Assembly (NCBI GenBank): GCA_964247055.1
Contig: OZ176051.1
Location: 14,942,001-15,006,000 of the forward strand
From: Paragordius varius
Taxonomy: Eukaryota; Animalia; Nematomorpha
Length of the DNA: 64,000 nucleotides
Reading direction: 5' to 3'
Both the position numbers and the translations under genes were made by a program. Shown piece after piece: positions 32,846 through 35,197 of the stretch; position 1 is the first letter of the stretch; every line of letters begins with the position of its first letter. The notes under the pieces are model-generated. The model had not been told where the DNA came from. It saw only the letters and a list, made by a program, of their open reading frames with translations, and did not search any database.

Positions 32846-33550
32846 ACATTGATGGTCATTCTTTTTTTCAATAAAAAGAACCAGAAATATAAATCAAACT
32901 TAACGATATTTCATCCAAAATAATCGGGCTCAAGTAACTTAACACAAAATTGTTCATAGAAAACTTTCCTTATTGTTTGACTGCCATTTAATTTATTTTT
33001 TGTTGTTTTACAAAATATTGGTCAGTTTAAGGCAGGGATGTCCAACACAAATGGCTTGAAGAGCCACCTTTTTTTAACCTATAGATGTGCTAATTTTCAT
33101 ATCAAAAAGTAAATAAACAGTATAAATATAATGATGCTTTGCTAATTAAATTATATCAATGTGTAAAAAAAGATAAAAAATACATGTATATGGTAAACTT
33201 ATTGCAATTCGATGGTATGACTAGAGTAGACTGTAACGAATTTAATCCTCAAAATGTAACCTTTTTATATTTAATAAAAATAAAAGAAAAAAACATTGTA
33301 TAATTAAATTTTTAATAGGATATTTGTTTTGTTATTTTTTTGCTTAATTTATTCAAATCTATACCAATATTTGAAGCACATCTCAATTCATTCTCGAAGT
33401 TTTCATCAGTTAATAAAGAACGTGAAAGAGATTTTGTGTATTTTATTTTAGAAAAAAAACTTTCACAAAGATAAGTAGACCCAAAAGCACAAATTAATCT
33501 TTGTGCAAAAATTCTTAAATCAGGAAATTTATCAAAGGTTAATATTTTTG

Positions 33551-33734
33551 AATATAAATTATTTTCGACACGTGAATAGTATAAAAATATGGAAATTTAT
33601 TTAAAACGTATCATAGAATAAATAAATTTATATATTTTTTTACGCTGAGGACGGACACACGTTAAAAATGTCCGAAACCGTTCGCGGATTTTATTTATTC
33701 ATGATACGTTTTAAATAAATTTCCATATTTTTAT
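33551..33734 (+). mobile_element. 184-bp insertion with 13-bp TSD, 45-bp inverted arms and a hammerhead-ribozyme-like core (Penelope/retrozyme-like)
   Basis: gttaatatttttg is duplicated at 33538-33550 and 33735-33747. Arms at 33581-33626 and 33690-33734. Core CTGAGGA-c-GGACA...TGTCC-GAAA at 33645-33677. Confidence 0.7.
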
Positions 33735-35197
33735 GTTAATATTTTTGTAAAATTCAATTTTATTTGTTTGCCCAAATAATTTTAATTCAATATTTTCCAA
33801 ATCCAGTAATTCCATTTGTAATAATAGGAGCGTTGATAGATTCAACGTAGAATGGACAACAAAATAAATCAAATATTTTTTCATATTTTGTCATATCCCC
33901 GTATCGATTATTAAAAGCTTTTAATAATATGTTAATTTGATTTGCATATTTTGAAAAATCGTTAGTTTTACCAGCTTTAAATCTATTCAATTTCGGAAAA
34001 TGTTCAGCACTACTTTTATAAATGGCATTCAAATAACGTCAATTTTTTACAAAACGCTTTAATATGGTTACTGGCATCAACAATTAAATTATCTTGCTTT
34101 TGCAAGGATTCATTTAATTGATTTAGTTTTTCGGTAATATCTACGGGAAAGCATAAATCTGACAACTAATCTTCATTGGTTAATTCCTCTACGCAATAAT
34201 TATTCTGCAATAGAAAAATATTTATTTCTTTAATAAATAATAAACCTTTTTAGACATTTCCCTCGAGTAAGCCACCTTACATTTGAAAAAATATAAGATC
34301 TCCAGATTCTGAATGAATTTCTTTTATGAGATTTTATAAAATTAACTACTTTAATAACAACGGTCATAACATTGTCCATTGTAGGAGCATGTGAGCAGAG
34401 ATTTTCACGGTGAATCATGCAATGTATTATATATATATGGTCAATATTAATATCATCGGATTCCATCTTATTTAACAATAATTTTATGGTTCCTTTGTTT
34501 TTTTCCCATCATAGCTAAGGCACCATCTGTTGTCAAACAATATAGCGCCATCATATTTAATTTATTTTCCTCAATACATTTTAAAATTGCATGAAACATA
34601 TCATCTCCCTTGTATTTTTCATCGGAGCCTAACATATCTTCTGTTATATTAAAAAATTCATCTATCCCTCGAATAAAGACTACCATTGTGATATGTTTAA
34701 AAACGCCACAAAATTTTGAATTCTTTCTTTTAGGGAAAGTTGAATTTCTTCTGCGATGTCTGTAATTCGTCGACACATAGCATTGCGCGAAAGACGTATA
34801 CTGGATATTAATTCAACTTTATTAGGCAAAACACATTTTATTCTAGTACGAATTCATTTACAAACTCACCATCAGAATAAGGCTTCATTTTTTTGGCGAG
34901 TTAATTGGCAACAATATAACTTGCCTTTACTATCGGGTAAGGTTGCGTAAATGAAATTGTTGGTTGGAGATTATTAATATTTTTAAAGATTCTAATTTTA
35001 TTATTTCATTTCTGTAGCCATATTAATAAAATTCAAATGCATGGTATTGGCATGTCTTTTTAAAATATATTCGCGAACGTTTGTCGTAAATTTGCAAATA
35101 AGGCACTCCGCTTTGTTAAAAATTTGAGTAAACCCATATTTTAATTCCCAGACGGGATATTTTATAGTGACTTTTTTAGTTTTATGCATATTGAAAT

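Follow-up and report, generated by a model that had tools for sequence, protein, structure and literature searches.

The 64,000-nucleotide (nt) window analysed here (assembly GCA_964247055.1 of the nematomorph Paragordius varius, contig OZ176051.1, positions 14,942,001 to 15,006,000, forward strand) carries on its minus strand a decayed hAT-type transposase pseudogene that is interrupted by a 184-bp insert. This insert is very likely a dead-on-arrival insertion of an autonomous, protein-coding Penelope-like retrotransposon (Penelope-like element, PLE) whose full unit is ~2.92 kb in length with an additional 33-nt tail. The features of the locus, in window positions, are listed below; reference positions are those of the PLE unit described in the next sections.

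33339-35189, minus strand: decayed hAT-type transposase pseudogene (host), with fragmented open reading frames (ORFs), weak Dimer_Tnp_hAT and Spin-doc-type zinc-finger matches, and at least 40 genomic matches
33538-33550, unstranded: target-site duplication (TSD), left copy; exact direct repeat, with a single target copy in paralogous hAT copies
33551-33580, minus strand: PLE 'tail', 30 nt past the 3' arm, at one end only; reference positions 2955-2925
33581-33629, minus strand: tail-bearing copy, the 3'-terminal ~49 nt of the PLE unit; 98.8% identity to reference 2876-2955 (with the tail)
33627-33734, plus strand: tail-less copy, the 3'-terminal 106-108 nt of the PLE unit; reference 2819-2924
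33642-33687, plus strand: PLE-type minimal type I hammerhead motif; sole descriptor match in the window, with 37 exact genomic copies
33735-33747, unstranded: TSD, right copy; 13 bp, on the same basis as the left copy

A 184-bp insertion in a decayed hAT transposase gene

The sequence GTTAATATTTTTG is present as an exact copy at both 33538-33550 and 33735-33747, with the 184-bp insert (33551-33734) between them. The final G of the left copy can also be read as the first base of the tail, giving a repeat of 12-13 bp. In five paralogous hAT copies the two flanks of the insert abut at an uninterrupted site with one copy of the target each, and the 13-bp repeat is therefore a true TSD. These empty-site paralogs translate in frame through the site as EFYKKYITFDKFP (translation of the paralog alignment). 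The host copy in the window is 2 nt shorter in the target than its paralogs, and it is because of this difference that excision of the insert rejoins the transposase reading frame with a 1-nt shift. The 13-bp TSD, the hAT host and the shifted frame had all been described in a first-pass annotation of the window, made by a model from the letters alone, and all three hold on closer analysis.

The insertion point lies within the C-terminal dimerisation region of the host pseudogene. The 66 codons directly downstream of the insert (FDKFPDLR...) give a weak match to Dimer_Tnp_hAT (E 0.001, 19.3 bits vs the Pfam cut-off of 21.4), and the upstream host piece gives a weak match of the Spin-doc zinc-finger type. 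Besides the PLE insertion the window copy is disrupted by several frameshifts. The hAT family to which it belongs is middle-repetitive, with at least 40 places in the genome matching the window copy at 84-90% identity.

The insert folds into the long AT-rich hairpin that had been noted by eye, with arms at 33581-33627 and 33688-33734 (-63.9 kcal/mol, z = -11.3 against dinucleotide shuffles) and a hammerhead-like CUGAGGA...GAAA motif at its apex. A microRNA (miRNA) reading of this hairpin was considered and rejected; the weak miRNA-type Rfam matches obtained, such as that to MIR8562 (26 bits vs a gathering score of 211), are caused by the AT-rich hairpin itself.

The insert is composed of two inverted 3' ends of a Penelope-like element

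When searched against the 110-Mb assembly, the full 184 bp matched only itself, and no further 184-bp copy with a different TSD was found genome-wide. Its two halves are present many times: bases 1-79 matched ~25 other element ends at 93-99% identity and bases 77-184 matched ~40 element ends at 86-97% identity, and the genomic places matched by the halves are the ends of larger elements. A natural unit from one such element (locus L034; 2924 nt plus a 33-nt tail) was used as the reference. Mapped onto it, the insert has no sequence of its own and consists solely of two inverted 3'-terminal fragments of an autonomous PLE that encodes a reverse transcriptase (RT) and a putative GIY-YIG-type nuclease, one of 80 nt with the tail and the other of 106 nt without it.

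The tail-bearing copy is 5'-truncated after 80 nt in total and ends just short of the hammerhead motif, while the 5' truncation of the tail-less copy falls ~18 nt upstream of the hammerhead core. The two copies join at 33627-33629, where they overlap by 3 nt as mapped. The 45-bp stem of the hairpin is nothing more than the stretch over which the two inverted 3' ends overlap, a by-product of the head-to-head structure. The tail in the window lacks the last 2-3 nt of the 33-nt family tail, which in 8 other units likewise stands after one arm of each.

The parent element encodes a reverse transcriptase and carries nuclease motifs

The reference locus L034 (C10:2825436-2830679) is a PLE unit with an intact 859-residue ORF. 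This ORF matches Pfam RVT_1 at 9.8e-16 (58.5 bits vs a cut-off of 29.6) and has RT-type matches in NCBIfam as well; a PDB sequence search returned generic RT matches only. Its C-terminus reads GVY-KVP-CEC-G-RVYIGQT followed by R...NEH...AEH, that is, a GIY motif and a YIG motif enclosing a Cys pair, and a Cys pair in this place is the mark of PLE nucleases (PMC8557442). In the ESM Atlas the closest clusters, at a score of 0.98, consist of animal proteins 770-840 residues long that carry RVT_1 and GIY-YIG. The RT-nuclease linker, inspected by eye, is without a Cys motif of the Neptune/Nematis type. The search for linked RT and GIY-YIG Penelope ORFs that the first-pass annotation had proposed is answered by the full elements, which encode RVT_1 and GIY-YIG-type motifs; neither their ORFs nor a Pfam scan revealed an encoded transposase.

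The L034 locus is arranged in the classic manner of PLEs, with a full unit preceded by a 587-nt partial tandem copy (a pseudo-long terminal repeat, pLTR), beside which lies a 1733-nt inverted 5'-truncated copy. The full, tandem and inverted parts are 100% identical, and this identity suggests very recent activity of the family.

Nine insertion units share one anatomy

Nine insertion units were mapped onto the L034 reference unit. All nine consist of two head-to-head, 3'-anchored copies with variable 5' truncation. One copy in each unit ends at reference position 2924 and the other, which includes the tail, at ~2957, so that exactly one outer end is tailed in every unit (33 nt; 30 nt in the window). 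The outer ends are fixed and the inner ends are free to vary, with component lengths ranging from 80 to 2924 nt:

1058 + 657 nt
about 2550 + 906 nt
2651 + 95 nt
2924 (+587 tandem) + 1733 nt (L034)
361 + 1297 nt
218 + 758 nt
168 + 2173 nt
144 + 767 nt
80 + 106 nt (window; shortest of the nine)

The corresponding unit sizes are 0.18, 0.92, 0.95, 1.7, 1.7, 2.3, 2.7, 3.5 and 5.2 kb, and the TSDs, read from the flanks, are 11-14 bp in length (13 bp in the window). Truncated insertions of an autonomous PLE form a continuum, of which the window insert is the shortest member. The 3'-end arms also occur as direct repeats (tandem pLTRs) in L032 and L034, full-size elements have inverted ends of roughly 100 nt, and most other PLE families of this genome are likewise arranged head to head.

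Two further observations concern the flanks. Across the flanks of the nine units, window 33538-33550 among them, the target beside the tailed end reads ...TTG in 7/9 (CAA next to the tail in element orientation), a possible sign that the nuclease has a weak target preference or that the tail end shares microhomology with the target. At L033 (C5:10195722, C5:10199568) one outer flank repeats the other, inverted, over at least 30 nt, and no tail is present at either end; here the inverted duplication seems to extend past the element into host DNA.

The element resembles canonical endonuclease-containing PLEs

Canonical endonuclease-containing (EN+) PLEs of the Penelope/Poseidon type (Evgen'ev & Arkhipova 2005; Craig et al. 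2021, PMC8557442) have a single ORF in which an RT is followed by a C-terminal GIY-YIG-type nuclease with a Cys pair, a layout that the ORF of the present family follows in its RT domain and its nuclease motifs. Their insertions show heavy 5' truncation and lie in tandem or inverted, with TSDs that vary in length and a tail of 30-40 bp confined to one end (PMC8557442). The family described here has the same tandem pLTRs, adjoining inverted 5'-truncated copy, one-ended tail, variable TSDs and heavy 5' truncation, as well as a hammerhead near the 3' end. The window copy is extreme among such insertions in that both head-to-head copies have been cut to ~100 nt or less, leaving only two 3' ends. 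Six features of EN+ PLEs were considered: four are present outright (the RT, the tandem and inverted copies, the one-sided tail and the variable TSD), the nuclease is present as motifs only, and the hammerhead is present with one deviation.

Two points weigh against this assignment. The Pfam GIY-YIG model misses the C-terminus of the L034 protein, whether the whole ORF or the nuclease part alone is scanned, and the NCBIfam scan likewise gave no GIY-YIG match, so that the nuclease is a putative one, assigned on its motifs and on the look-alike proteins of the ESM Atlas. In addition, the PLE assignment was drawn from the features and anatomy of elements in this one genome. On these features we assign the insert to the canonical EN+ PLEs. 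The earlier proposal that the insert is a retroelement made by Penelope-type target-primed insertion is supported.

A minimal hammerhead motif lies in the pseudo-LTR

The apex of the hairpin reads CUGAGGA-C-GGACA...UGUCC-GAAA-CCGUUCGCGG, and the motif can be laid out as follows, all on the plus strand:

33642-44: helix I 5' strand, ACG
33645-51: core, CUGAGGA
33652: unpaired nucleotide between A9 and 10.1, C
33653-57 and 33669-73: helix II, GGACA/UGUCC, 5 bp with an 11-nt loop
33674-77: GAAA box, followed by CCGTTCGCGG
33678-82: C15.2, spacer C, G16.2, U16.1 and U17, in the A-C-C-G-U reading
between 33682 and 33683: predicted cleavage site
33683-87: helix I 3' strand, CGCGG

The descriptor used called for pairing between core positions 3 and 8, allowed one extra nucleotide, and specified GAAA and a G-C-closed helix II of at least 5 bp. 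It gave one match in the 64-kb window, the motif in the insert, where 0.07 are expected (100 second-order Markov simulations of the window sequence); the core is present just as it had been described in the first-pass annotation. The exact motif pattern has 37 copies in the genome vs 0 in a reversed control. All eleven invariant core nucleotides are present (CUGA-GA, GAAA and U16.1), and so are the G10.1-C11.1 pair and the extra nucleotide, specific to PLEs, that follows A9. The motif is on the sense strand of the element, 240 nt past the stop codon and inside the last 106 nt of the unit, and is therefore part of the pLTR.

In the minimal hammerhead ribozymes (min-HHRs) of metazoan PLEs a single nucleotide separates A9 from G10.1, G10.1 pairs with C11.1, helix II is rather long and helix I very short, and stem III is all but absent (PMC4209133). 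With the pLTR hammerheads described by Cervera & De la Pena (2014, PMC4209133) in metazoan PLEs the present motif shares the type I topology, the CUGANGA/GAAA core, the unpaired nucleotide and the G10.1-C11.1 pair, and also the 5-6-bp helix II, the very short helix I, the GUH site and the near-absent stem III, which implies action as a dimer. In contrast to the published motifs, a single C stands between C15.2 and G16.2 in this family, and the reported 15.2-16.2 palindrome is thus not formed. The core is in these respects of the kind found in Penelope pLTRs, as had been suspected.

The first-pass annotation regarded the cleavage triplet as non-canonical and saw two options for stem III, namely CCG-UUCG-CGG or a reduced A-C-C-G-U. 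The letters of the first are present in the window, but its reading as stem III is rejected: it relies on the G at 33687 that completes the hairpin, and an alignment of 30 family arms shows this G (an A-to-G change) to be private to the window copy, the family sequence at this site being CGCGAA or CGAA. The second option is kept by the family and yields a canonical site. All subfamilies keep GAAA-C-C-G-U-H followed by C, with H being U or A; A-C-C-G-U-H gives a canonical GUH site, in which A15.1 pairs with U16.1 and C15.2 with G16.2, and a single C serves as spacer.

Conservation was compared among subfamilies L046, L047 and L050, the proteins of which are 50-67% identical to the reference ORF. 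Within the motif, substitutions are confined to N7 (G/A), loop 2, the sixth helix II pair (C-A, U-A or U-G) and H17, all of them sites where a hammerhead can bear change; the core and five helix II pairs are invariant, and helix II reaches 6 bp (U-A or U-G) in the subfamilies. Copies within the family are 90-97% identical, and individual decayed copies carry core mutations, as expected after insertion. Two further arguments were tried and set aside. Past the GAAA box stand the palindromes TTCGCGAA and TTCGAA; they were rejected as a dimerisation helix III, not being contiguous with A15.1, and the upkeep of a palindrome was rejected as covariation, since the loss of one CG from a CGCG run preserves it trivially.

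A possible non-catalytic stem-loop

Several observations weigh against a hammerhead ribozyme at this position. The whole 3' untranslated region (UTR) is 60-87% conserved between subfamilies and the motif forms no isolated island of conservation within it; because of this, conservation of the motif points towards a hammerhead without deciding the matter. The single C between C15.2 and G16.2 makes A-C-C-G-U non-palindromic, such that a dimeric helix III would contain a C-C mismatch. Helix I is conserved in 2 bp only (C1.1-G2.1 and G1.2-C2.2), with weak A-U or G-U pairs beyond; a 2-bp helix I has been reported for the PLEs of D. virilis (PMC4209133). Finally, the Rfam hammerhead models match no PLE motif, either in 33400-33900 (E up to 10) or at four PLE loci (E up to 5). 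The Rfam search, which had been suggested in the first-pass annotation as a check, is uninformative because the same models miss the textbook U3-A8 min-HHRs of this genome (L040).

The block might then be a non-catalytic 3' UTR stem-loop, conserved for its recognition by the element's RT and resembling a hammerhead core only incidentally. Such a reading is helped by the conservation of the UTR as a whole, by the atypical spacer C and short helix I, by the lack of an Rfam match, and by two published findings: PLE min-HHRs are poor ribozymes that cleave weakly in vitro (PMC4209133), and hammerhead cleavage is dispensable for insertion of the Anolis element in vitro (PMC11167929). It sits poorly with the presence of every invariant core nucleotide, with the PLE-specific extra nucleotide and G10.1-C11.1 pair, and with the fact that the core positions which vary are N7 and H17. 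Nor does it account for three unrelated PLE families having hammerhead cores at the same position, in which the 3-8 pair covaries as C-G, U-A and G-C. We consider incidental resemblance somewhat unlikely, though it is the strongest of the alternatives.

As judged from its sequence, the hammerhead-like motif is the minimal hammerhead of the family's pLTR, with a presumed ribozyme activity. In full tandem copies it would process a transcript of more than unit length, two motifs probably acting together as a dimer. The window copy itself is inert, with one motif, no partner, and neither an ORF nor an upstream element copy, and the earlier suspicion of an inactive copy was correct.

Hammerheads in other PLE families of the genome

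Min-HHRs are found at the same relative position in three other PLE families, whose proteins share ~30-40% identity with the reference ORF. L040, L041, L044 and L051 (e.g. C6:304300-310800; protein ~30% identical) have the U3-A8 motif UUGACAA-a-[7 bp]-GAAAUAUU, and L052 (C5:2078000-2082200; likewise ~30% identical) has the U3-A8 core UUGAAAA-a-[5 bp]-GAAAAUUU. These U3-A8 hammerheads lie 130-310 nt past the ORF stop, and the variant has already been described (PMC4209133). L036 (C1:8511500-8515500) and L038 (C1:14246800-14250300) carry GUGAUCA-a-[GAUCAUG]cuaa[CAUGGUC]-GAAAUAUA, in which the core pair is swapped to G3-C8. This motif has 9 exact copies in the genome, ~160-170 nt past the ORF stop, and the associated protein is ~38% identical to the reference ORF. 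We know of no described natural PLE hammerhead with the G3-C8 swap. The genome thus holds C-G, U-A and G-C versions of the hammerhead 3-8 pair. With a relaxed descriptor, no hammerhead was found within 600 nt of the ORF end in L037, L039, L042, L043, L045, L048, L049 and L053; these copies may be decayed, or may carry variants outside the descriptor.

The A-C-C-G-U-H motif of the present family could conceivably be a functional and undescribed min-HHR variant that cleaves as a dimer across the C-C mismatch, and would then complete, with the U3-A8 and G3-C8 cores, a natural three-way covariation series of the 3-8 pair. We regard this as decidedly unlikely.

Other origins for the insert

The first-pass annotation had taken the insert for a tiny non-autonomous, ribozyme-bearing retroelement and possibly an undescribed family. 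In this interpretation a separate retrozyme- or SINE-like (short interspersed element-like) family is mobilised in trans by PLE enzymes, as the TSD and the PLE-type hammerhead core would allow, and animal retrozymes have indeed been proposed to derive from PLE pLTRs (bioRxiv 10.64898/2026.07.22.740005). Animal non-LTR retrozymes and ORF-less PLE derivatives are likewise short, non-coding, hammerhead-bearing and mobilised by PLEs. Retrozymes, however, are multi-copy families with a unit of their own and tandem hammerheads, whereas the insert, a one-off fragment of an autonomous element, has a single hammerhead motif and lacks any tandem period. The genome has only one copy of the 184-bp structure, each of its halves aligns with the 3' end of the autonomous unit (93-99% identity) with nothing private to it, and its size lies at the end of a 0.18-5.2 kb continuum of truncation. 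A form that is single-copy and has no private sequence is therefore not a separate non-autonomous family; that part of the earlier interpretation falls, and we hold it to be highly improbable.

Scarcely credible is a miniature inverted-repeat transposable element (MITE), or else a foldback DNA transposon whose termini are long inverted repeats, derived by internal deletion from a 3-kb DNA element. The long inverted arms, the TSD and the roughly 100-nt inverted ends of full-size elements would suit it, but the tail of 30-33 nt is confined to one side and makes the ends asymmetric; the arms represent the 3' terminus of a unit that encodes RT, and also occur as direct repeats (tandem pLTRs in L032 and L034); the inner break-points vary while the outer ends are fixed, as in 5' truncation and not internal deletion; the TSDs vary from 11 to 14 bp; and no transposase is encoded.

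A proposed mechanism for the insertion

A doubly truncated PLE insertion can be accommodated by what is known of the Poseidon element of Anolis carolinensis (PAc), for which it was found in vitro that both target strands are cut and extended and that the tail is the sequence between two adjacent RT start sites (PMC11167929). The family described here has the same two alternative 3' ends separated by the tail, and probably the same use of both target strands as primers; each unit would thus have one tailed and one tail-less end because of the two alternative 3' ends and both-strand priming, as in PAc. It differs from PAc in that the hammerhead overlaps the ORF start there and lies ~100 nt upstream of the ATG of the next unit here.

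We infer the following order of events. Following the published PLE model, the nuclease of the element would have cut both target strands 13 bp apart. Both strands would then have primed reverse transcription from a pair of neighbouring start sites close to the RNA's 3' end, one of which includes the tail while the other does not. Both complementary DNAs (cDNAs) would have stopped or switched very early, at 80 nt and 106 nt, and would have been joined head to head, with gap repair giving the 13-bp duplication.

Significance

On its own the insert is minor: it adds another dead fragment to a class of retrotransposon that is already known. It is at the same time a clean, minimal record of the PLE integration signature, with priming on both strands, a 3' end that has the tail and another that lacks it, a TSD of 13 bp and a paralogous site that is empty, and this signature agrees with the two-start-site model derived from the Anolis element. 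Long AT-rich hairpins with an apical hammerhead in this genome are to be read as doubly truncated PLE insertions, and not as new ribozyme elements or miRNA-like genes. Where such miniature head-to-head insertions fall in transcribed DNA, they could conceivably act as hairpin sources of small RNAs directed against the parent PLE, an idea that we think unlikely.

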